DNA of 64,000 nucleotides, from sequence record PP885733.1; one strand, written 5' to 3'. The first letter of the stretch is position 1. Each line of letters starts with the position of its first letter. Of the stretch, positions 3,225-18,516 are shown piece after piece. The position numbers and the translations under genes are program-made. The notes below the pieces were generated by a model. The model was not told the DNA's origin, did no database searches, and saw nothing but the letters and a program-made list of their open reading frames with translations.

Positions 3225-4100
3225 ATGATGCTAAATGGTTATGAGACTACAGTAGGTAGTCGCTTTAAGGTTAAGGACAAAGTCGAGGAGACTGTAAAGT
3301 TACTCCAAAGTACTAACCGCCTTGACATGGTAGATACTCGTGGGGTATTCGCAATTGACCAGAAGAACGACTTTGGTCTTGCTCCATTTATCTTCCCAAT
3401 CTCTGTTCTTAACTACATGCGCGAACCTGTAACAGTTCTCGATCAACGCACCTACTTTAATAGTCAGGGCCGTAACGTGAACGTACCGGAATACAACATT
3501 ATGTTGTTAGGTGCTATTCTTCAACAGGACCTCCAGCGCAACAACCTGTCCTTGGTTAAATCTGTCCGTCCGTACACTATCAAAGCATTCGCTAATGCTG
3601 TTGGTAATGCAATTGGTCGTACAGTAACTTTGGACATTCTTCAGAAGATGACACTGCGTATCATCCTGGCACACTATTTCGTGTGTTTGTCTGAAGATCC
3701 AAACGTAGACTGGAAGTTTGTATCTGCAAACGCCGTCTCTCGTTCTCTGCGTGTTTCTCAGCAGGACGTTCTGGAAGTAGCTGATGAAGTTGGCTTCCTG
3801 AGTAAGCTGGAAGATCTCCAGAAAGCGATCGTAAACCACCCTGCACTGTTCCCGCTGAAGCGTCTGGACATTGGTGGTCTGGTAGCCGCTGGTTCTTCTA
3901 TCTTCTTCGCAACGTCGGGCTTCCGCCAGCTGATGGGTGCTGCACTTGAGATGCCTACATTATTTACGGCTATCTGTCACGGTGCTGCGACTCAGCGTAT
4001 TTATCAGAACACTGCTGTTGGTCAAGAACTGAACGTTAAGACCGATAAGTCTGTTGAGAACTTCATCCGTACAGTTGAGTATTACTTCAACTCGAAATAA
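3225..4100 (+). CDS. Conserved virion protein (phiKZ gp28-like position)
   Basis: 291 aa ORF divergent from sheath; synteny only. Confidence 0.5.
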   Translation: MMLNGYETTVGSRFKVKDKVEETVKLLQSTNRLDMVDTRGVFAIDQKNDFGLAPFIFPISVLNYMREPVTVLDQRTYFNSQGRNVNVPEYNIMLLGAILQQDLQRNNLSLVKSVRPYTIKAFANAVGNAIGRTVTLDILQKMTLRIILAHYFVCLSEDPNVDWKFVSANAVSRSLRVSQQDVLEVADEVGFLSKLEDLQKAIVNHPALFPLKRLDIGGLVAAGSSIFFATSGFRQLMGAALEMPTLFTAICHGAATQRIYQNTAVGQELNVKTDKSVENFIRTVEYYFNSK

Positions 4101-4124
4101 CGTTTACTTCTTGGGGTGTAATTA

Positions 4125-6929
4125 ATGACCGCATATTCTCTTGAATATACCCAAGACAGAAACCCAATGGTTGATTACGCTACAAAGAACATGTGGGGTA
4201 ATCCTGAACTCGATTCCCAGTATCAGATCAAACTGAGCCGGGTATCGGGTAACCAGGGTTTCATTAACGACTTTCCTTACTGGGGTAAGAGACATCTCCT
4301 GCCTAGTAACCTTGAGTTCTATCATGTCTTTAGCTTAGCTGGACTTGATATCGGATTCTGGAACATGGGGAGTCGTGGGGAGAGCTGGTATCCACACAAC
4401 CAGTGGATTAAAGCAAGTACCTTTGCTCGTAACCGTGGTATCAACATTGATATCTATTCGGGTAATGGTTCCATGTTTGTTCGTGATGAAACTTACATCA
4501 TGGATACGTTCCAAGGCGGTACATTACTGTGCATTCCTAAGAACGTTAACTTCCCTCTCCCGTTGGGTAAGAATCTTTATATGCACTGTTACACTGTGGA
4601 CATCAACACCCGCACTGTATCAGATGCAAATCTGCTGAAGTACTCAGTCGGTTATGTCGGGCACATCTATCAGAAGCCTGCGGACTTTGATCGTGTTAAG
4701 CTGAACTACGATACGTGGAAAGCTTTCAACATGGGTCAGGTTCTGTTCTGGCACAACGGTGTGACCAAAGACATCAACTCTATCACTTGTATTCCAGGTG
4801 ACATGATTGAGGCAAGCTATGATCCTTCCATTGAGATCATTGCAAGTTATCGCTACAACAAGATGCCTGACTACTATTCGGAAACGGATAAGAAAAGGAA
4901 AGTGATCTTGTTCCCAGGTTTCAAAGACAAGCCGCGTGTCTATCGTTATTACGATGACTGTATCTACTTTGTAACCAACCGTCGTAATGGCAATATGTAC
5001 TACTATAACCGTAACTCTGAAGATGCTGTTCGTCAGCTAACTCATCAGGACTACGGGATGTGTGCATCTTACATTGACTTCCTTGCGGATCGACATATTA
5101 ATGAAGACCCGACCAAGAAGACCACCATCAATGACATTGACATTACTGTGGCTTATCACAAGACTCTGTGGAAGGTTCCTGTCGGACCAACTTCAAGTCG
5201 TATTAACGATCTATATTTGCTCGAAGATTTCAACGATATCCTCGACGCACTGACAGGCGTTAAGTCATCTATTCCTGAGTGGACAGCTAACAAGCTGGAA
5301 AGCTCTCCGACTAACTTGGTACTGAATCGGGATGTTCGCTTCCTGAAGACCAAAGCTATTCGTGAAGGGTTAGGTTATAATGGTTGTGCTGTTGCTATGA
5401 GTAACACACCGCTGTACATGCCTTATGACCCACCGGGAACACCTAACCATAAACCGATCTATCTCACTCCTCCTTATACTTCTGGGTTGGGCTACAAAGT
5501 CCCGCCAACTTACGTTGAGTATTCCACAGCGTATGAGTATGGAGAAGATGGTCTCCTGTTACGTTTACGTCAGGTGATCAATCAGGAATGGTACATGCCT
5601 AGCGAAGACTGCTTCTATGTTGAGTGGGCATTGGGTAAAGCAACTCAGAAGGTTGACTACGTCGTTTCACAGAAAGACGTTAAGATCAAACTGGGTTATG
5701 GCTTCCGTGTTTATAAAGCACCTTACGCCGCACCTCCTGAACCTCCTGAGGGAGATGGTAAAGAGATTAAGGTCAGTACTGATGGGACTAACCCGTATCC
5801 TCCAGACGGTAAAGAACTCCGTGTGTGGGAACTGGATCAGGGTGAGGGTGAAGATCCTGACTTGCCAGATGGTGGTTTCCTGAAAGGACCTTGGGTTGAT
5901 ATTACTGGAACCGATGAGTACGAGATCATCAACGGATATGTTGTCTTCCGTTTCGATACGGTCAACTACATGGGCTTGGTAGTTTCTGACTATCACCACA
6001 TCTATAACAGTTTCAACCTGTCTCACATTGACAACTCGCTGTCCTTTGCTATCACACGTAGCTGGACTATCGGGGATAAGATCCTTGAGATGGAACCAGG
6101 TCAAATTGACATCTGGATGAACCGACATCCTCTTACCGAGAACGTCGACTACTATCTCGATTTCCCGAACGTCTACATCACTAACAAAATGTGGTTAGTT
6201 GATGGACCACAGTTCTTCCAGTATCGTGCTACCGGTCTTTCTAAGAACGGTTTGGTGAACACGAGTGAGCTGGGGATTGTTGCTGACAGTGTGATCGGTA
6301 TGAATGGTCGTTATAACCTTCGTATCGACAGACCAACCAAAACCATTATGGGTGGTCGTTTGTTCCTGACACAGACGGTTGACTCAGGTGAGGATATTAA
6401 CCACGGTCGTAATGCAGCTAAGTACAATGGCTGGCCTTATGAGGTCAAACACATTTACTGCGCTAACAAGTACGTCGACTGGTATGATACTTATTGGGGT
6501 TATGAGGAAGCACGAGAACTCGATAAGAGAATCTCTGACTACCTGACCGAGCACGTCAAGTACAAACCTAAGGAAGCAACCACTACGGTATATATGGAAG
6601 ATGACAAGTATCGTCTCTATAGCCCGTTCCTAAGTATGATTGTCAACGAACTGCTGTTAGGGTTCATGGATGCACCTGCTCCTTCTGGGAAAGAGATTCC
6701 TTACCCAGCGAGTCTTATTGATAACATGACTCGTGAACATCAGTGGATGCTGAAATACGATCCAATCGTTAACGACATCGACTTACGGTTCTTTACCGTA
6801 CAGCCTTACAACAACAGAGAGATCGTAGAGGTCACTCCTGACCAGCTGACCTTTATCAAATCGATTAATGATTTGTTCTTAGGCGGTAAGGTCTATATCG
6901 AGGGTTATTTCGAGGTGAAGCATGTTTGA
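4125..6929 (+). CDS. Large virion/baseplate protein (phiKZ gp27-like position)
   Basis: 934 aa ORF between sheath and terminase; synteny only. Confidence 0.5.
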   Translation: MTAYSLEYTQDRNPMVDYATKNMWGNPELDSQYQIKLSRVSGNQGFINDFPYWGKRHLLPSNLEFYHVFSLAGLDIGFWNMGSRGESWYPHNQWIKASTFARNRGINIDIYSGNGSMFVRDETYIMDTFQGGTLLCIPKNVNFPLPLGKNLYMHCYTVDINTRTVSDANLLKYSVGYVGHIYQKPADFDRVKLNYDTWKAFNMGQVLFWHNGVTKDINSITCIPGDMIEASYDPSIEIIASYRYNKMPDYYSETDKKRKVILFPGFKDKPRVYRYYDDCIYFVTNRRNGNMYYYNRNSEDAVRQLTHQDYGMCASYIDFLADRHINEDPTKKTTINDIDITVAYHKTLWKVPVGPTSSRINDLYLLEDFNDILDALTGVKSSIPEWTANKLESSPTNLVLNRDVRFLKTKAIREGLGYNGCAVAMSNTPLYMPYDPPGTPNHKPIYLTPPYTSGLGYKVPPTYVEYSTAYEYGEDGLLLRLRQVINQEWYMPSEDCFYVEWALGKATQKVDYVVSQKDVKIKLGYGFRVYKAPYAAPPEPPEGDGKEIKVSTDGTNPYPPDGKELRVWELDQGEGEDPDLPDGGFLKGPWVDITGTDEYEIINGYVVFRFDTVNYMGLVVSDYHHIYNSFNLSHIDNSLSFAITRSWTIGDKILEMEPGQIDIWMNRHPLTENVDYYLDFPNVYITNKMWLVDGPQFFQYRATGLSKNGLVNTSELGIVADSVIGMNGRYNLRIDRPTKTIMGGRLFLTQTVDSGEDINHGRNAAKYNGWPYEVKHIYCANKYVDWYDTYWGYEEARELDKRISDYLTEHVKYKPKEATTTVYMEDDKYRLYSPFLSMIVNELLLGFMDAPAPSGKEIPYPASLIDNMTREHQWMLKYDPIVNDIDLRFFTVQPYNNREIVEVTPDQLTFIKSINDLFLGGKVYIEGYFEVKHV

Positions 6930-8662: not shown

Positions 8663-8704
8663 CATAACCCCTACCCCTCCTCACGGAGTGGGTAGGGGAA
8701 TATG
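8663..8704. terminator. Bidirectional intrinsic terminator; identical to 11639-11680
   Basis: CCCCTACCC-ctcc-TCAC-ggag-tGGGTAGGGG hairpin between convergent genes. Confidence 0.85.
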
Positions 8705-11638: not shown

Positions 11639-11680
11639 CATAACCCCTACCCCTCCTCACGGAGTGGGTAGGGGAATATG
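11639..11680. terminator. Bidirectional intrinsic terminator; identical to 8663-8704
   Basis: 42-bp exact copy between convergent genes. Confidence 0.85.
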
Positions 11681-12288: not shown

Positions 12289-13760
12289 TATGTCATCGCA
12301 TCCATCGTTAAAGTTCGCAGGACGATGTAAAGCATCAACGAGGTACGCAGAGACGTGATCTTAATGTCAGTCTTGATACCAGTCATTGCTTTAACTAATT
12401 CGTCACCATTGTTTCTGAGCTTCAGCAATAGAGCGTTTGACGATTTACTTGAGGTGTATGCACCACGGATCTTAAAGAAGATATTCTTTATATCGTTGTG
12501 GCGAATGCTGTTGGAGTTGAGATACTCAAACAAGTGAGCGATCACATCATCAACAAACAGTCGGTACTGTTCACCTTTAGGGTGAGCGTACTGCATTGGG
12601 AAATCCCGAAGGATCATCTCAAGCTTATCAGCATCCGTTCTTGGTATTGCTTTAGCGGCATAGATTGCAAGTTCCTGTTTATAAAAACTGTTCTTGTCGT
12701 TCAATACACCACTAATATAGTTACGATAACGAGTCTCTCGTTTCTGAACATCTTTGATATTCAGTTCACCATCCAGGATGGCTAAACCAGAGTCGGTTTC
12801 CACCAGGTCGACGGAATCCTTAATCTCATACAGAACTTTGGTATAGTCGTTGATTACACCTTTGAGACGGGATTCCATATCGTTCACCATGTAAACGATT
12901 TTCTTATCGTTATCCATCTTCGTAAAGGCATCAAAGTGAATACCAGTACGAGGGTCGATAATGAACTCTGCACGAGCACGGAACAGCTCGTTCCATGAAC
13001 CATAACGCTTGATATCAAACTTCAACGAAAGCTTGTTGTAGGCGGTTACAGCGACACTGTGCTTAACAAGGTAGCCGTAATAGTGGTTCATGATAGAAGT
13101 CATGATACGATAGTGGAAAAGCATGATGATGTTAACCATCGCATCTTCTTTCAGGTTACGTGGTAGGTCTGAATTCCATACCCGGTGTAACAAATAGATG
13201 CAGGACAAGTTAAAGACTTCAGATGAAACTTTAAAGTCTTTGTTGATCCATTTGGTCTTGATCAGTTCATCTCGTAAACGCACTTCATCAACATCGATAA
13301 TGTCACGGAAGAAAGTAACACGATCAGAAGTTTTAAACAGAACACGATGCGTTCCCAGATATGGCGAGCCGAAGAACTCAGTGTGATCGTTGTCTTTCGT
13401 TGCGAAGCCATAGACGTAGCGCTTAAGGGTTTTAACCCAACGTTCGTTAATGACGAGATCATCCACATACGCGTCGAAGATGTCTTTAACAGCATCATCA
13501 CGGTTGTAGTTGAAGTTAGGTTGGAGTGCTTCCATACCGGCGACGAACTCTGGGGTTAACAGAGATTCCATACCGCCGAACTGGTTGAACGCAGGTATTG
13601 GACCAAACATTGTGACTGGAGCATCAGGGTTAGCAGCTTCTAACCCAGCCAACATCTCAGTCAGTTCGGGATCTTGCATTGAACGTTCATACAGTTCTTC
13701 TGGAGACAGTTCCACAAAGCGGTACTTAATAATACCGCTATATAAAGAACGTTTGTCCAT
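12288..13760 (-). CDS. Conserved phiKZ-like protein, probably virion-associated
   Basis: 490 aa, translationally coupled to its neighbours. Confidence 0.55.
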   Translation of the reverse strand: MDKRSLYSGIIKYRFVELSPEELYERSMQDPELTEMLAGLEAANPDAPVTMFGPIPAFNQFGGMESLLTPEFVAGMEALQPNFNYNRDDAVKDIFDAYVDDLVINERWVKTLKRYVYGFATKDNDHTEFFGSPYLGTHRVLFKTSDRVTFFRDIIDVDEVRLRDELIKTKWINKDFKVSSEVFNLSCIYLLHRVWNSDLPRNLKEDAMVNIIMLFHYRIMTSIMNHYYGYLVKHSVAVTAYNKLSLKFDIKRYGSWNELFRARAEFIIDPRTGIHFDAFTKMDNDKKIVYMVNDMESRLKGVINDYTKVLYEIKDSVDLVETDSGLAILDGELNIKDVQKRETRYRNYISGVLNDKNSFYKQELAIYAAKAIPRTDADKLEMILRDFPMQYAHPKGEQYRLFVDDVIAHLFEYLNSNSIRHNDIKNIFFKIRGAYTSSKSSNALLLKLRNNGDELVKAMTGIKTDIKITSLRTSLMLYIVLRTLTMDAMT

Positions 13761-14605
13761 TAGCGTTTCCTTGGGACGTACATTTTCAGTGAGTCAGCTT
13801 TACCCTTAGGATCAGAGTAAGCGAGATATTTCTTCATCTCATTGTAGTACATGTCTTTAAACTCACGACCTGCATCAGCATAGCCTTGAATCTCATCCTG
13901 GACATCTTCCACAGACACACCGAAACGACTAACAGCTTCCTGCATACCACGACGACAGTTCTTATAGATGTAAGCCTTAGTACCCAGCTCAATCCACTCA
14001 GCGAACTTGTCATGCATCTTCGGATGAAGAGATGTAAAGTGATCATCAAACGAGAGTACCACTTTGGCGATCATATTAAACATGGCAGAACCTGCATCAC
14101 GAATGATGAAGGAGTTATTACCTGTCATGGTAATGTTGGTAAAGGTACGCTGAACGTTACTGTCATCAAGACCGTTGATCAGACGGCTTAATGCATTGTT
14201 CATCTGCCCAGTACCACAGTTGGCATAACCACTAAAGTTATTACCATTCATGATAGCCCGGTTGATATTACCCGGATAGACTTCTAATACCTGCATGATG
14301 CGACGACCACCGGTTAAGAAGTCAGGAACGTTTACGGCAATTACACCACCGGCCAGGTTTTCAATTCGTGCATAACTAAGATCCACCACTTCAGTTGTAC
14401 CACCCGCCACGTTCATTAGCGGTGCACACATCTTCATGATAACCTTTTCACGAATACCCTGATCGACTGTGAATTCACTATTGACTGGTTGCCAAACACT
14501 ACCGTACCCGTTATTAGGATTGTCAAAAGCGAGTTTCAACATATACGGTGAGATGTCAGACGGACCATCAACAATGTAGTTGATAGCAAAATCTACAGCG
14601 CTCAT
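13760..14605 (-). CDS. Conserved phiKZ-like protein, probably virion-associated
   Basis: 281 aa, SD upstream, coupled to the next gene. Confidence 0.55.
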   Translation of the reverse strand: MSAVDFAINYIVDGPSDISPYMLKLAFDNPNNGYGSVWQPVNSEFTVDQGIREKVIMKMCAPLMNVAGGTTEVVDLSYARIENLAGGVIAVNVPDFLTGGRRIMQVLEVYPGNINRAIMNGNNFSGYANCGTGQMNNALSRLINGLDDSNVQRTFTNITMTGNNSFIIRDAGSAMFNMIAKVVLSFDDHFTSLHPKMHDKFAEWIELGTKAYIYKNCRRGMQEAVSRFGVSVEDVQDEIQGYADAGREFKDMYYNEMKKYLAYSDPKGKADSLKMYVPRKR

Positions 14606-14646
14606 ATTTATACCCTTGCAAGGAACTTACAAATGATTTAAACAGA

Positions 14647-14689
14647 CATAAACCCCTACCCCACCTTTCGGAGGAGTAGGGGCAATATG
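14647..14689 (-). terminator. Intrinsic terminator closing the RNA island transcript
   Basis: Minus strand CCCCTACTCC-tcc-GAAA-ggt-GGGGTAGGGG followed by TTTATGTCTGTTT; variant of the 8663/11639 family. Confidence 0.8.
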
Positions 14690-14696
14690 CTTTAAT

Positions 14697-14791
14697 CACC
14701 GACGGTCCCAAAGAGGTCTGGAGTCCTCTATCCCTGGAACCCGTTTCGTCCACTTATTTCACATCGTCGGACTCATCAGGGTGTACGATGC
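14697..14791 (-). ncRNA. Type I hammerhead ribozyme
   Basis: Minus strand: CACC (stem I)-CUGAUGA-GUCC...GGAC (stem II)-GAAA-CGG...CCG (stem III)-UC|GGUG; complete invariant core; 7-bp pseudoknot GCAUCGU/ACGAUGU between the 5' flank and loop II; predicted cut between 14701 and 14700. Confidence 0.92.
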
Positions 14792-15370
14792 TCCCACTAA
14801 GAAGTAGGTCGAGTTACCCGATATCGTGCAAATCTCATTGTGAGATCCATTGGTCACTTTGAACATCGATGTTCAGGACCCAAATGCAACTGTCGTTCGG
14901 GTAACTCAATAGGTGTGCTCAACGCTTAGAGCTGAACGACGAATCACGTCTGTCTCGTTCGCTCTAGGTCAAGCACGAATGGGTACAACGTTCCCAGCTC
15001 TGATAGATATTGTTTTTTATGACCGCCCAGGATGGAGTTCGGGTTCTACCATCATCTATAACCCGGATATACCGGGAGTGCATTCAGCTTATGCTACTGG
15101 ACATTCTATCAGCGCGTTGTGATAGCCGGAATCCCCGGCAACCCACCAGAGGCTACTTACAATAGCGGACTTCTGCCGCCGTTCACTCTCTGGATTTATC
15201 CCTGAGCAGGTGAAAGCTACTCAGAGTTTGCCTTCTCCAGCCAGTCGGGGAGGTGAGACCCCAATACCGGAGAAGGTCTTACAACCAATGTCGACTGGTA
15301 GACTCCTGTTAAGCGGCCCTGGCAGCAGGCGCATTAACCCAAATCTACGCTTCCCGACGTTTCGGTTGTT
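14701..15370 (-). ncRNA. Putative large structured ncRNA (~670 nt) ending in the hammerhead
   Basis: No credible ORF; nested helices 14811-14821/14897-14907 (11 bp perfect), 14915-14922/14969-14976, 15000-15007/15105-15112; pseudoknot 15231-15238/15269-15276 with 15241-15247/15292-15298; G-U pairs favour the minus strand. Confidence 0.65.
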
Positions 15371-15376
15371 ATCCTT

Positions 15377-15871
15377 TTAAACCGCACAGCCATCCTTGCA
15401 GTCGTTGTCAGGAATAATGGCAGCAGCTTCTTTCGTTGCTTCTTCCATACGTTCCTCGTTACGAGCTTGTGCGTCTTCCAGGTCGCCAAAGTGCAGGTTA
15501 TCCGGATCGAAGTTATCGATGGACACTTCTGGCTTGTCGGCCTTGAGTTCTTTGACTTTCGCTTCGAACTCGGTGAAACCGCCGATGTAAACATCATCGA
15601 GCAGAATCTGTGGAACAGTGCGAACTGGACGACCCAGCATTTCACTGAGCTTTTCGCCGTCAATACCTGCAGCGCGAATATCAACGTAAGTGAATTCGAT
15701 CTTTTCGCGTTCACACAGAGCTTTTGCGCTGTCGCAGTATGGGCAGTTCGGGCGTCCGTAAATTACAGCTTTCATTGTTGGTGGTCTCAGCTTGATAGTA
15801 ACTTCTCCACCCGATACAAAAGGCATGGAGTGCGGATAGTTATAAGGTTCTGGTGGTACGTAACCTTCCAT
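15377..15871 (-). CDS. Glutaredoxin with N-terminal extension and acidic Cys-containing tail
   Basis: CPYC active site, TVPQI and IGGF motifs; TAAGGA SD. Confidence 0.9.
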   Translation of the reverse strand: MEGYVPPEPYNYPHSMPFVSGGEVTIKLRPPTMKAVIYGRPNCPYCDSAKALCEREKIEFTYVDIRAAGIDGEKLSEMLGRPVRTVPQILLDDVYIGGFTEFEAKVKELKADKPEVSIDNFDPDNLHFGDLEDAQARNEERMEEATKEAAAIIPDNDCKDGCAV

Positions 15872-15886
15872 TATGAATCCTTAATA

Positions 15887-16250
15887 TGGCTCGGTCTTGA
15901 GAAGGTCTTCCTCAACTACTGTGATGACACCCAGTGGTAGAAACTAATCATCCACCATCATGTCACTACGACGTCTAAGACGCAACCGAGGTAATTTGAT
16001 AGGCAGGCTCCGAGTAACGATCTCGGCTTATCACTTAGTACAGTACAGAGGGAGTTGTCCCTAATAACCGCTAACAAGGTCACCCGAGTGGTTACGGGGG
16101 AGTTTGTACCTAAGCTTGCTCCCATAAGCAGCCGCCGTTGAAATATGGGTACGGGCTATTCGTCTTTACGTTGTGGTGGGAAGTGGATCCCAGGTATGGT
16201 CGCCGAAGCGCCCCTGGCCTGTTGTACCCAACTGCAAATAGCCCGTAGTT
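15887..16250 (-). ncRNA. Putative structured RNA (~360 nt) between tRNA-Ser and glutaredoxin
   Basis: ORF-free; helices 16150-16160/16237-16247, 16146-16151/16225-16230, 15997-16002/16028-16033, 15890-15896/15984-15990; cUUCGg tetraloop on the minus strand at ~16201-16210. Confidence 0.55.
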
Positions 16251-16252
16251 TC

Positions 16253-16341
16253 TGGCAGAGAGTAAGGGATTCGAACCCTTGTGCCCCGAAGGACAACCTC
16301 CTTAGCAGGGAGGCGACTTAAACCAGCTCATCCAACTCTCT
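16253..16341 (-). tRNA. tRNA-Ser(GCT), encoded CCA
   Basis: Cloverleaf, anticodon loop CTGCTAA, long variable arm with UUCG loop, GTTCGAATC T-loop, ends GCCA. Confidence 0.95.
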
Positions 16342-16345
16342 AATC

Positions 16346-16421
16346 TGGCGCTCGTGACAGGGCTCGAACCTGTGACATACGGATTAACAGTCCGCCGTTC
16401 TACCGACTGAACTACACGAGC
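16346..16421 (-). tRNA. tRNA-Asn(GTT), encoded CCA
   Basis: 76-nt cloverleaf, anticodon loop CTGTTAA, GTTCGAGCC T-loop, ends GCCA. Confidence 0.95.
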
Positions 16422-16427
16422 AAAACT

Positions 16428-16895
16428 TTAATTCGCACCAGAATGAATGTTGACTTTCGGAGAGTCGATAGTCAAAGATCCCGAAGCTCTGATGCTCAAA
16501 CCATCAGCGGCAGCTTTCTTGCCGTTGATTACTGAAACTGTTACACCAGTATCACTGATGACGTACGCTTCCATATCTGACGTGATGTAGATAGGAGGTA
16601 CTGGCATATCTTTGGGCGTGTTCTGATAAATGATGGCGACACAGTTATGCGGGAGATTGAGATCACCGGCAAAGTCACCTATCTGTTTTGTTTCAGGACA
16701 GACCCTGTAAACCGTGTAGTCATGATGGAGTACACGACAGCGTTCCTCGCTGATAATTGGGAGAATGCCTTTAGAGTTAAAGAACTCTTCCTTCATGGCA
16801 CTCACTTGCGCGATAGCTTGATCGGCAGGGAGATCTGAAACATCAACATTCATAAGAATGCGAGAATCAGGAGTACGAATGGTTTTCAACAACAT
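16428..16895 (-). CDS. Hypothetical protein
   Basis: 155 aa ending 6 nt before tRNA-Asn. Confidence 0.7.
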   Translation of the reverse strand: MLLKTIRTPDSRILMNVDVSDLPADQAIAQVSAMKEEFFNSKGILPIISEERCRVLHHDYTVYRVCPETKQIGDFAGDLNLPHNCVAIIYQNTPKDMPVPPIYITSDMEAYVISDTGVTVSVINGKKAAADGLSIRASGSLTIDSPKVNIHSGAN

Positions 16896-17073
16896 AGCTT
16901 TCTCACTTAGTTAGTTTAGTTGGAGTTTGCTAGTTCGATAATCCCCCGCTTTTCATTTAAGGAAGCGCTGATTCTTACTTACAATTCAAGGGATCCTCCG
17001 CCTTCGCCTGACACCTTGGTCAATGCAAATAGGATTCCAATCTATCGTGTTGGGAAGGGCTGCGGGGTTTATC

Positions 17074-17277
17074 TTATCCTGCGTTAAATGAAGAATGTAC
17101 AACGCCTGGTTCCTGAGAACCTGAAACGCCGATCATCTTCACCGTCACTGGATCGTATTTAGACCACAGTTCTGTGGCCTCGTACTTGGCAGCGCATTCG
17201 CTAACTGCCGCTACGACACAAGAGTCGTATTCATCATATCCTACAGAATCGGTTCTTTCTACGATATACAGATTCAT
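17074..17277 (-). CDS. Small phage hypothetical protein
   Basis: MNLYIVERTDSVGYDEYDSCVVAA...HSSFNAG, a pattern common in phage small proteins; start placed at the internal ATG (track starts at 17388). Confidence 0.7.
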   Translation of the reverse strand: MNLYIVERTDSVGYDEYDSCVVAAVSECAAKYEATELWSKYDPVTVKMIGVSGSQEPGVVHSSFNAG

Positions 17278-17546
17278 CAATTTAGCCTCAGTTATTAAAC
17301 GATCAGTGTTTATAACGTCGGTAGAATGTGTGATATCGATTTTTCCAAATTGTGATTGACTTATACTTTCCGTAGGCGTCACTCTCACAGAAAGACCTGT
17401 CTCGACTCATGCAACCATTTAGTTGCGGCGTCCGTCACAGGTAGACATCGGGTAGTCCCGCAGAAGAGGCAGAGTGCCATGGCGTAACACTCACTTTGAT
17501 CTACGGGACTTTGATCGTTACAGAGTATAGAACTCTGACTGATTAA

Positions 17547-17822
17547 TTACTTTACTTCGTACCAGTCTTTACCATTCAGGTCGCTTACTGACGGAACCCA
17601 GGTGTTGACTGTCCCGGTTTTGGCATTGACGATAACGAAGAAAGGTTCGACGTATGCTTGCTCACCATCAGGGAGAGTTACATCGATGGCCGCTACTGAA
17701 CCATGTTGTTGAACGTAGATATCTTTACCGTTCCATCCAGCGCGAGCTACCTTGCGACGATTCTGCTTGAGAAGCAAAGCTTCTGGATAACCCATCCCTG
17801 GTGTTGCGAGTTGCTGAGTCAT
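17547..17822 (-). CDS. tad2: DUF2829 / Tad2-like cyclic-nucleotide sponge (anti-Thoeris)
   Basis: Family hallmarks KVARAGWNGK and WVPSVSDLNGKDW; 91 aa; AAAGGTG SD. Confidence 0.8.
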   Translation of the reverse strand: MTQQLATPGMGYPEALLLKQNRRKVARAGWNGKDIYVQQHGSVAAIDVTLPDGEQAYVEPFFVIVNAKTGTVNTWVPSVSDLNGKDWYEVK

Positions 17823-17844
17823 ACTTCACCTTTGTAATCGAAAT

Positions 17845-17882
17845 AAAAAGGACCCCTAGAGTCTGCACGACCTATAGGGGTC
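17845..17882 (-). terminator. Intrinsic terminator directly upstream of tad2
   Basis: GACCCCTA/TAGGGGTC stem followed by TTTTT on the minus strand. Confidence 0.65.
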
Positions 17883-17942
17883 AATAAGCGATACCAGCAG
17901 GCATACGCTTTTTCTGTTTACTCATTCAAATCGAATAAACAC

Positions 17943-17967
17943 AAAAAGAGTAGGGACCGAAGTCCCT
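17943..17967 (-). terminator. Intrinsic terminator
   Basis: AGGGAC-TTCG-GTCCCT followed by ACTCTTTTT on the minus strand. Confidence 0.7.
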
Positions 17968-18457
17968 TTCTCTGGAACGGATATGAAGGAAGCTTAAAAC
18001 CTTCTTAAAGGGAACTCAAGCAAGACCCTTTAAGAAAGCGAGAGCCCTGGGGTATTGAATCCAAGGCTCTCCACTTTAAACGCTTTGGAGGAGATAGACA
18101 ATGAAGGCCAGACTTTGCGGAGCACAGCTTTCTTACTGACAACTCATTCATTAGAGAGATCACTAAGAAAGGGGATGTTGGCTGCATCCCACTTTATTAA
18201 CGAGGAGTATAGCAATGGCAATAGCACTAAAACGATGACGAAGGGAGCTGGCAAAGGCACACTTCTGTAAGGGAACTCGATTCTAAGATCCTTAAAGAAG
18301 TGGAGACGCTATTTTTACATAGTATCTCCGAACCCTGTAAAATTAAAATCATTCAACAAGAACGACAATGAGCAATGTGCAAACATGAGTATGAAAATCG
18401 TCGAGAGCAAGTTCGATTTATTTCACATAATATATTAGACTGCCATTTAAAAATAAG

Positions 18458-18477
18458 TAGATATTATCGTATTGCTA
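18458..18477 (+). promoter_or_regulatory. Putative early promoter
   Basis: ATATTAT-cgtat-TGCT, 40 nt upstream of the 18517 ORF. Confidence 0.5.
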
Positions 18478-18516
18478 AACGAATGAGATATTTAAAATAA
18501 CCTAGAGGAACCCACC

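Follow-up and report, generated by a model that had tools for sequence, protein, structure and literature searches.

What does a jumbo phage express from a run of small genes, tRNA genes and a long unannotated gap that ends just before a virion gene? The question was raised by the locus at positions 17880-14647 of a 64,000-nucleotide stretch of sequence record PP885733.1. The record is the genome of Pantoea phage Survivor, a phiKZ-like jumbo phage of 271,576 bp, and the stretch analysed, called the window below, matches its first 64 kb exactly. All coordinates are positions in the window unless another record is named, and every element of the locus lies on the minus strand. A preliminary description of the window had proposed that a single precursor runs through the locus and is cut into modules, one of which might become a circular RNA. 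We found that the gap behind the glutaredoxin gene holds a large structured non-coding RNA, which recurs in relatives and ends in a predicted hammerhead ribozyme. On the most economical reading, the locus is a cassette that serves to express tRNAs and non-coding RNA, is conserved in one clade of phiKZ-like jumbo phages, and would be co-transcribed and then matured by tRNA-type processing and self-cleavage. The probability of this reading, cassette and maturation together, is put at roughly 65%.

The gap downstream of the glutaredoxin gene (15376-14606, 771 nt) contained no conserved open reading frame (ORF). The longest ORFs in it were short, lay on differing strands and in differing frames between phages, and were not conserved. 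The indels between Survivor and Edwardsiella phage pEt-SU had lengths of 6, 4, 1, 1, 3, 2, 2, 7, 3, 1, 1, 1 and 1, mostly not multiples of three, and the substitutions showed no 3-base periodicity. The region is non-coding. Conservation ran from the glutaredoxin stop codon to the hammerhead, with 76.5% identity to pEt-SU over the full length, and it delimited an RNA of ~670 nt (15376-14701) consisting of a body of ~575 nt and a hammerhead in the last ~95 nt. The 5' boundary of conservation was sharp, and the first hairpin (15365-15354) covaried. The most conserved core (15218-14970) was 79-84% identical to Klebsiella phage N1M2, the Serratia phages and Kosakonia phage Kc263, and part of it was 83% identical to Shewanella phage SXP01. 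The flanking protein-coding DNA of the phages matching the core was no longer matched by blastn. In two relatives, genes for hypothetical proteins are annotated over the large RNA (positions 3233-3745 of N1M2, N1M2_252, L007; positions 4007-4198 of Kc263, L004). Their ORFs were unconserved, and these annotations are probably artefacts.

The structure of the large RNA was examined by covariation. RNAalifold on 12 sequences gave 71 pairs, 41 of them with compensatory changes. A curated structure (alignment A4) was made from the RNAalifold helices, one further helix and the hammerhead. It had 76 pairs in 14 helices, with 55 pairs in the body and 21 in the hammerhead. In this structure 91.4% of the cells were paired compared to 76.5% in shuffled alignments, both sides had changed in 48 of the 76 pairs compared to 29.5 ± 2.9, and the covariation score was 0.485 compared to 0.217. 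None of 500 shuffles reached the observed value in any of the three. When the structure was slid along the alignment, pairing fell to 37-49% and the scores to 0.09-0.12. The two clearest helices lay at alignment columns 118-126/155-163 (9 bp) and between 14909-14897 and 14821-14809, where a long-range helix of 10 bp closed a 3' domain found in all members. The alignments were made with ordinary MAFFT and were not structure-aware, so several helices are probably missing from the model. The large structured RNA noticed in the preliminary description was borne out by these compensatory changes and by its conservation in the 12 aligned relatives.

The family was variable in the middle. In two IMG/VR contigs (uv16 and uv20; L016 and L020), ~200 nt of the middle domain were missing, and Pseudomonas phage OBP (L009) had diverged there. 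All three kept the 5' part, the 3' domain and the hammerhead. It follows that the large RNA is built of modules, of which the 3' domain is universal. Scans of sequence collections for members gave 14 matches in the viral collection, 6 of them true, two in the metagenome collection and one, unrelated, in the genome collection. A metagenome contig of 1237 nt (VFSW01420984.1, L034) carried tRNA-Met, the large RNA, the hammerhead and the start of a second structured RNA, described below, in the same order as elsewhere.

No known family accounted for the large RNA. Rfam 15, whose models cover GOLLD, ROOL, RNase P, group I and group II introns and tmRNA among others, gave no match to it at E ≤ 10 for the RNA alone, at E ≤ 10 for 14400-18300 or at E ≤ 0.1 for eight relatives, and literature searches yielded no description of it. 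Apart from tRNAs, the Rfam scans of the window, the region, the RNA and the relatives gave matches at chance level. RNase P RNA was considered and rejected. Motifs of the types AAGUCCGC and GAACCCGA were present, but they formed a local covarying hairpin instead of a P4-type helix, and the Rfam RNase P models were silent. A group I intron was rejected as well, as there were no flanking exons, the glutaredoxin gene was complete in relatives and no Rfam intron model matched.

The last part of the large RNA was predicted to be a type I hammerhead with a complete canonical core, in which stems II and III are closed and stem I is open. The core consisted of CUGAUGA (14779-14773), GAAA (14747-14744) and GUC ending at C14701. 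Here GAA corresponded to 14747-14745, and A14744 formed the A15.1-U16.1 pair with U14702. The predicted cleavage lies between C14701 and G14700. Stem I paired CACC (14783-14780), directly 5' of CUGAUGA, with GGUG (14700-14697), and stem II paired GUCC (14772-14769) with GGAC (14751-14748). Stem III was long (~45 nt) and branched and had a conserved loop of the UCCAG type. Loop II had 17-22 nt and was joined to a 5' extension of stem I by a pseudoknot of 5 bp (14790-14786 with 14766-14762).

The core was found in 13 distinct relatives, namely eight phages, four IMG/VR jumbo-phage contigs and one metagenome contig. It was invariant across the 12 aligned relatives except at N7, which was U, C or A as the consensus allows. 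In the 12-sequence alignment of the hammerhead, 85% of the fold was paired compared to 74.8% in shuffled alignments (0 of 500), the covariation score was 0.342 compared to 0.147 (0 of 500), and both sides had changed in 10 of 20 pairs. Sliding the fold lowered pairing to 28-45%. Compensatory changes fell in stems I-III and in the pseudoknot and were reproduced on alignment A4. The pseudoknot was predicted by RNAalifold without guidance. Its strands were CAUCG/CGAUG in Survivor, UGUCG/CGACA in Serratia phage Sureiya, CGUCG/CGACG in Kc263 and GUUCG/CGAAC in SXP01, and its pair types across relatives were CG/UA/GC, AU/GC/UA and UA/CG. A hammerhead cleaving at 14701 had been named in the preliminary description, and the canonical core, invariant in the relatives, together with the covarying stems and pseudoknot upheld it.

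The predicted ribozyme resembles the type I hammerheads with a stem I-loop II pseudoknot described by Perreault et al. 2011 (PMC3088659). The core, the three helices, the open stem I, the 5-bp pseudoknot and the location in a phage intergenic region are the same. Such pseudoknots are a known route to fast hammerhead cleavage, and a role in controlling transcript stability has been suggested for hammerheads located between phage genes (PMC3088659). Unlike those hammerheads, the one in Survivor has a long, branched stem III and a long loop II, is fused to a structured RNA of ~575 nt and brings no Rfam hammerhead model to its threshold. No description of jumbo-phage hammerheads turned up in literature searches. 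When all 271,576 bp of the genome were scanned for cores with stem II, only one credible hammerhead was found. Three other core-like strings lay inside annotated coding sequences, had weak stems and were rejected. A weak match of the LAGLIDADG-2 RNA model to hammerhead stem III (11.4 bits, E 4.5) was taken as chance. SXP01 carries an isolated stretch, GACGAAACGG..CCGUC (L006, 3975-4030), which corresponds to the 3' half of a hammerhead and stands ~350 nt 5' of the large RNA. It was rejected as a second hammerhead, as it has no CUGANGA strand, and is probably a remnant.

The surroundings of the large RNA differed between relatives. On the 5' side, tRNA-Met ended a few nt before the first hairpin in Sureiya, Serratia phage Yubaba, N1M2 and contig L034. 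Directly before the large RNA came the glutaredoxin stop codon in Survivor, pEt-SU and Kc263 and another ORF in OBP and Erwinia phage AH04. OBP had tRNA-Arg, tRNA-Met and an ORF between glutaredoxin and the large RNA. Where tRNA-Met abuts the RNA, there is no room for a promoter in front of it. On the 3' side, a second conserved structured RNA of ~240-290 nt stood between the cleavage site and a terminator-type hairpin in nine of 12 relatives (for example at 4610-4880 of L003; also in L004, L007, L008, L009, L011, L015, L016 and L020). It opened with a covarying hairpin whose loop read GCCYUAACYGUGA. Survivor, pEt-SU and SXP01 have lost this second RNA, and in them the terminator-type hairpin followed ~18-30 nt after the hammerhead.

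The terminator-type hairpin of Survivor (14682-14653) had 12 bp with one U.U mismatch and a GAAA loop. It aligned ahead of the DUF7484 gene in 12 of 12 relatives and had the GGGGUUUAUG tail in 8 of 12. Hairpins of the frame CCCCUA..UAGGGG occurred four times in the window (8668-8698, 11644-11674, 14653-14682 and 17853-17880) compared to 0.03 expected. The first three read CCCCUAC..GUAGGGG, two of them were identical, and one copy of the frame lay between convergent genes, a placement like that of a terminator. The cassette is bounded by such a hairpin at either end, 17853-17880 upstream and 14653-14682 downstream. This terminator element was the only one among the over-represented k-mers of the window, which included no early-promoter motif. 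Between 17851 and 14821, a consensus scan of the minus strand detected no site resembling a terminator, in agreement with the earlier statement that the unit has no other obvious terminator. Late promoters of phiKZ share only T(-3)ATG(+1) (PMC7598289). TATG follows the hairpin in 8 of 12 relatives and is the sole conserved feature of such promoters, so a late promoter directly after the hairpin is plausible, and TATG at 14647-14650 plausibly marks its start for the DUF7484 gene in Survivor.

The order of the locus was conserved beyond the large RNA. All elements of the preliminary description were found on the minus strand where it had placed them, using ARAGORN, Rfam, Pfam, the ORF list and the sequence itself, and their order recurred in relatives. 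The same order was shared by Edwardsiella phage pEt-SU, Serratia phages Sureiya and Yubaba, Kosakonia phage Kc263 and Shewanella phage SXP01, and likewise by Klebsiella phage N1M2, Erwinia phage AH04 and Pseudomonas phage OBP. The hosts span at least six genera. The 5' part of this order comprised a divergent upstream gene, a long intergenic region, a small gene, small ORFs, tRNAs and glutaredoxin. The 3' part comprised an unannotated gap of 760-1270 nt, the DUF7484 gene, a second virion gene and thymidylate kinase. The small gene before the tRNAs was of the Tad2 type where this was tested, namely in pEt-SU and one IMG/VR contig, which had Tad2 homologues in the corresponding position. In Survivor, the Tad2 match had E 4e-16 and 59.8 bits against a cut-off of 25 and covered the full length of the domain (1-73/73). 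DUF7484 homologues were found in 196 phage records, including the phiKZ-like Pseudomonas phages EL and OMKO1 and Escherichia phage Goslar.

The elements were closely packed. Six nt separated the 155-residue ORF from tRNA-Asn, 4 nt tRNA-Asn from tRNA-Ser, 16 nt module B (see below) from the glutaredoxin start, ~0-10 nt the glutaredoxin stop from the large RNA, and 18 nt the cleavage site from the terminator hairpin. Folding energies were less informative than comparison. Minimum free energy (MFE) z-scores against dinucleotide shuffles were -3.4 for 17546-17383, -0.3 for 17073-16896, -1.4 for 16252-15872 and -4.9 for the large RNA, and those of coding controls ranged from -1.1 to -4.1. By thermodynamics alone the gaps are not distinguishable from coding DNA. 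Comparative evidence does distinguish 16252-15872 and 15376-14701. The earlier statement that every intergenic gap is folded was supported for these two gaps, but not for the spacer 17073-16896 with its low z-score. This spacer was 72-82% identical to Kc263, pEt-SU, Sureiya and N1M2. Its stability was no better than that of shuffles, and something other than overall folding accounts for its conservation.

The gap after tRNA-Ser (16252-15872) contained two independent conserved modules, A and B, which are separate units because their order is swapped in AH04. Module A, starting 4 nt after tRNA-Ser, was the element that the preliminary description had called a pseudoknot and had named as an example of one that might cleave itself. 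It was present in six phages or contigs, and in these its start lay at most ~10 nt behind the 3' end of either a tRNA or module B. It had an almost invariant core of 45 nt, lying ~25 nt further in from the module start, and a covarying outer helix. The module is conserved and structured, but it had no Rfam match, no match to a ribozyme family and no hammerhead core, and so no mark of a ribozyme was found for the suggested self-cleavage.

Module B was found in six sequences (Survivor, SXP01, N1M2, AH04 and two viral contigs). It formed a four-way junction with an acceptor-type stem of 7 bp (6 pairs and one mismatch in Survivor), a short D-like arm and a T-like arm, and a 3' G-CCA was present in four of the six members. 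The arm in the anticodon position had ~18 bp and an invariant loop of 15 nt. The D-like loop had 4-6 nt and no GG, and the T-like loop was UUAAACU or UUAGAGU in five members and GAAGACC in Survivor. The ARAGORN default mode and the Rfam tRNA model did not report module B. In intron mode, ARAGORN called a tRNA in four of the six members, Survivor not among them, with inconsistent anticodons. Module B has the cloverleaf of a tRNA but neither canonical loops nor detection by tRNA models. It is tRNA-like and not a tRNA.

How the cassette would be expressed is suggested by its packing. Features lie 0-18 nt apart and a tRNA abuts the large RNA in four relatives, which points to co-transcription, and separate promoters are unlikely because the elements are packed too tightly. 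The unit would be transcribed as one precursor. RNase P and the tRNA 3' processing enzymes of the host would cut at both tRNAs and probably also at module B, and the hammerhead would cut itself between C14701 and G14700. Through this cut the large RNA would gain a precisely defined 3' end bearing a 2',3'-cyclic phosphate and would be freed from the terminator hairpin in Survivor or from the second RNA in most relatives. The product would be a linear large RNA, which in Survivor may stay joined to the glutaredoxin mRNA. The precursor of the preliminary description, cut by tRNA processing and self-cleavage, is a reasonable proposal given the tight packing and the recurring order.

Several observations weigh against the cassette as read here. 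The U-run after the hairpin at 14682-14653 is short (UUUAU), so the hairpin counts as a presumed terminator. The family is small, with members in 9 of 50,697 phage records, four viral contigs and one metagenome contig. It is not essential to the wider group, since the next-closest relatives, Aeromonas phages PS1, D6 and ZPAH34, do not have it; an nhmmer profile and a hammerhead regular expression found the family neither in these three nor in EL and RisingSun. In addition, Rfam did not report the hammerhead, the best result being a sub-threshold match to Hammerhead_3 (15.5 bits compared to a gathering score of 48.5). The same search was applied to five ordinary phage type I hammerheads in unrelated viral contigs (L010, L013, L014, L018 and L023), of which one scored 33.2 bits against a threshold of 34 and four were unreported. 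As control hammerheads were missed or under-scored too, the silence of Rfam is a limit of the models and not of the sequence.

Other explanations would give the same elements a different fate. In the circular form of the preliminary proposal, a piece of 1.55 kb (16250-14701) with the glutaredoxin ORF inside is released by two self-cleavages, carries 5'-OH and 2',3'-cyclic phosphate ends and is closed by an RtcB-type ligase into an exonuclease-resistant circle. The predicted hammerhead would leave the cyclic phosphate at 14701, a conserved structured module does stand directly after tRNA-Ser, and rtcB is presumably common in the hosts of Survivor's group. The second self-cleaving element, however, was not found, either as a further credible hammerhead in the 271.6-kb genome or as another ribozyme class (twister, pistol, hatchet or HDV-type) in 14400-18300 at E ≤ 10. 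Module A, besides having no hammerhead core, stands after module B in AH04 and not directly after a tRNA. The proposed piece also contains module B, at which RNase P would cut. The ends left by tRNA-processing enzymes are 5'-phosphates, which RtcB does not join. The piece itself is not conserved, as it is interrupted in Sureiya, Yubaba, N1M2 and OBP by tRNA genes that follow glutaredoxin and precede the large RNA. The 283 annotated features of the genome include neither an RNA ligase nor RtcB or Pnkp, and the only ligase among them is a DNA ligase (142972-144939); this is weak evidence, as it is a look at sparse annotation in which most genes are 'hypothetical'. Nothing in the sequence supports the glutaredoxin-carrying circle, and we regard it as most improbable. 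A circle or re-ligated form of the large RNA alone (~15376-14701), using the cyclic phosphate of the hammerhead and a 5'-OH from an unrecognised 5' cleavage, fares slightly better and is still very unlikely. The chemistry of the 3' end would be suitable, and the 5' boundary is sharp and opens with the covarying hairpin. On the other hand, Rfam detected no ribozyme at this boundary, tRNA-Met 3' processing would by established enzymology leave a 5'-phosphate where tRNA-Met precedes, no consensus helix joins both ends, and no ligase is annotated. The hammerhead-bounded circles of Avsunviroidae viroids and retrozymes have the same 2',3'-cyclic phosphate, which tRNA-ligase or RtcB-type enzymes can join. 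They have ribozymes at both ends or tandem repeats, whereas Survivor has a single hammerhead, no repeat and no detected partner.

The large RNA with its hammerhead could also act in cis, as an insulator or leader for the late virion operon from the DUF7484 gene onward. Self-cleavage would then cut read-through, separating early or middle from late expression, or would set the stability of the downstream mRNA. This is unlikely, though the most credible of these alternatives. The element always lies directly 5' of the DUF7484 gene, the conserved hairpin and TATG stand between the two, and control of transcript stability has been proposed for other intergenic hammerheads of phages. An insulator, however, does not need ~575 nt of covarying multi-domain structure, nine relatives have another structured RNA and a hairpin between hammerhead and gene, and the gene order persists in the next-closest relatives although they lack the RNA. 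Finally, gene decay or neutral spacer sequence could be invoked for the non-coding stretches, and a chance match for the hammerhead core. The z-scores of the gaps do overlap those of coding controls, and no Rfam family was reported. This explanation is refuted by covariation and can be set aside almost entirely: the core is invariant in all 12 aligned relatives, the compensatory changes are far above the shuffled and slid controls, and the RNA core is 80-84% identical across genera where blastn does not match the flanking coding DNA. The conserved cassette with co-transcription, tRNA-type processing and self-cleavage was therefore preferred.

Table 1. Features of the Survivor locus and the gene that follows it, in order of transcription.
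Feature	Window positions	Strand	Evidence or remark
Hairpin CCCCUAUAGG..CUCUAGGGG with U-run	17853..17880	-	Just 5' of tad2; upstream boundary; inner part 17863-17851 terminator-like
tad2 (Thoeris anti-defence 2-like, DUF2829)	17547..17822	-	PF11195; first gene of the unit
Hypothetical ORF, 104 aa from GTG or 67 aa from ATG at 17277	17074..17382	-	No Pfam match
Intergenic spacer	16896..17073	-	Sequence conserved; stability unremarkable
Hypothetical ORF, 155 aa (p155)	16428..16895	-	No Pfam match
tRNA-Asn(GUU)	16346..16421	-	ARAGORN; Rfam tRNA 73.7 bits
tRNA-Ser(GCU), CCA encoded	16253..16341	-	ARAGORN; Rfam tRNA 51.5 bits
Module A, conserved structured element	16150..16246	-	22 consensus pairs, 4 compensatory
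Module B, unannotated tRNA-like cloverleaf	15887..15989	-	36 consensus pairs, 18 compensatory
Glutaredoxin ORF	15377..15871	-	PF00462, E 2.5e-11
Large structured non-coding RNA, body	14791..15376	-	Covariation, 12 aligned relatives
Predicted type I hammerhead ribozyme, 3' end of large RNA	14697..14790	-	Invariant core and covariation
Terminator-type hairpin, then UUUAUG	14653..14682	-	Sequence; repeated element
TATG, candidate late-promoter start	14647..14650	-	Directly 3' of hairpin
DUF7484 virion gene	13760..14605	-	Next gene downstream of the locus

Further features of the locus were observed beside those of the cassette (Table 1). The glutaredoxin domain occupies residues 36-96 of the Survivor ORF, which has an N-terminal extension of 32 residues and a C-terminal one of ~50 residues, both absent from most relatives. 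The relatives L002, L003 and L008 have a separate conserved gene for a hydrophobic peptide of 41-42 residues just 5' of glutaredoxin, which Survivor does not have. Upstream of tad2, the intergenic region between divergent genes (17823-18516, 694 nt) gave the strongest local folding signal (MFE z -7.4) and had hairpin-plus-U sites on the minus strand at 17967-17952 and 17880-17853. It was 79% identical to pEt-SU and showed little identity to the others. Small RNAs may be encoded in this region.

Large RNAs of phages and prophages near tRNA genes have been found before. GOLLD and ROOL are such RNAs and are perhaps co-transcribed with the tRNAs, and one GOLLD (env-38) sits downstream of tRNA-Met. 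Like them, the Survivor RNA is longer than 550 nt, has many covarying helices, is encoded by a phage and lies beside or after tRNA genes. In four members tRNA-Met stands directly before it, as in env-38, and a universal 3' domain is combined with a dispensable, variable middle domain as in GOLLD and ROOL. Unlike them, it is matched by no Rfam model in the scans given above, and it belongs to lytic, nucleus-forming jumbo phages with gammaproteobacterial hosts. To our knowledge, a built-in 3' hammerhead has not been described for GOLLD or ROOL. By this analogy, the large RNA is best read as a tRNA-linked cassette RNA of the kind seen with GOLLD and ROOL, with a 3' hammerhead in addition, and as a member of neither family. 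The tRNA cluster of phage T4 is another point of comparison, as it encodes co-transcribed stable RNAs (species 1 and 2) and its processing is punctuated by tRNAs. In Survivor too, tRNAs, tRNA-like and stable RNAs lie a few nt apart on one strand and presumably in one precursor, from which RNase P and 3' processing enzymes would release them. In contrast to T4, Survivor adds tad2, glutaredoxin, the RNA of ~670 nt and a predicted self-cleaving ribozyme.

The analogy could be taken further. The RNA of ~670 nt may be the first of a new class of large phage RNAs that fold autonomously and are specific to nucleus-forming jumbo phages, an RNA-only machine matured by its own 3' hammerhead; this is a tentative and rather doubtful idea. 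If it were true, the RNA would be, for instance, oligomeric, catalytic or scaffolding and tied to the neighbouring tRNAs and tRNA-like RNAs, and the cyclic-phosphate end would matter for stability or later ligation. Standard annotation models miss canonical hammerheads and a tRNA-like element, as seen here. Complex large RNAs are rare in bacteria and phages. Only a few classes are known (GOLLD, ROOL, OLE and raiA), their roles are unsolved, and they are targets for structural and functional work. The locus adds a well-supported new RNA family in culturable lytic phages, whose hosts are tractable in the laboratory and include Pantoea, Serratia, Klebsiella aerogenes, Pseudomonas fluorescens and Erwinia. 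With its natural variants that lack a domain and a 3' end that would be fixed by a ribozyme, this family may make the role of tRNA-linked large phage RNAs directly testable.

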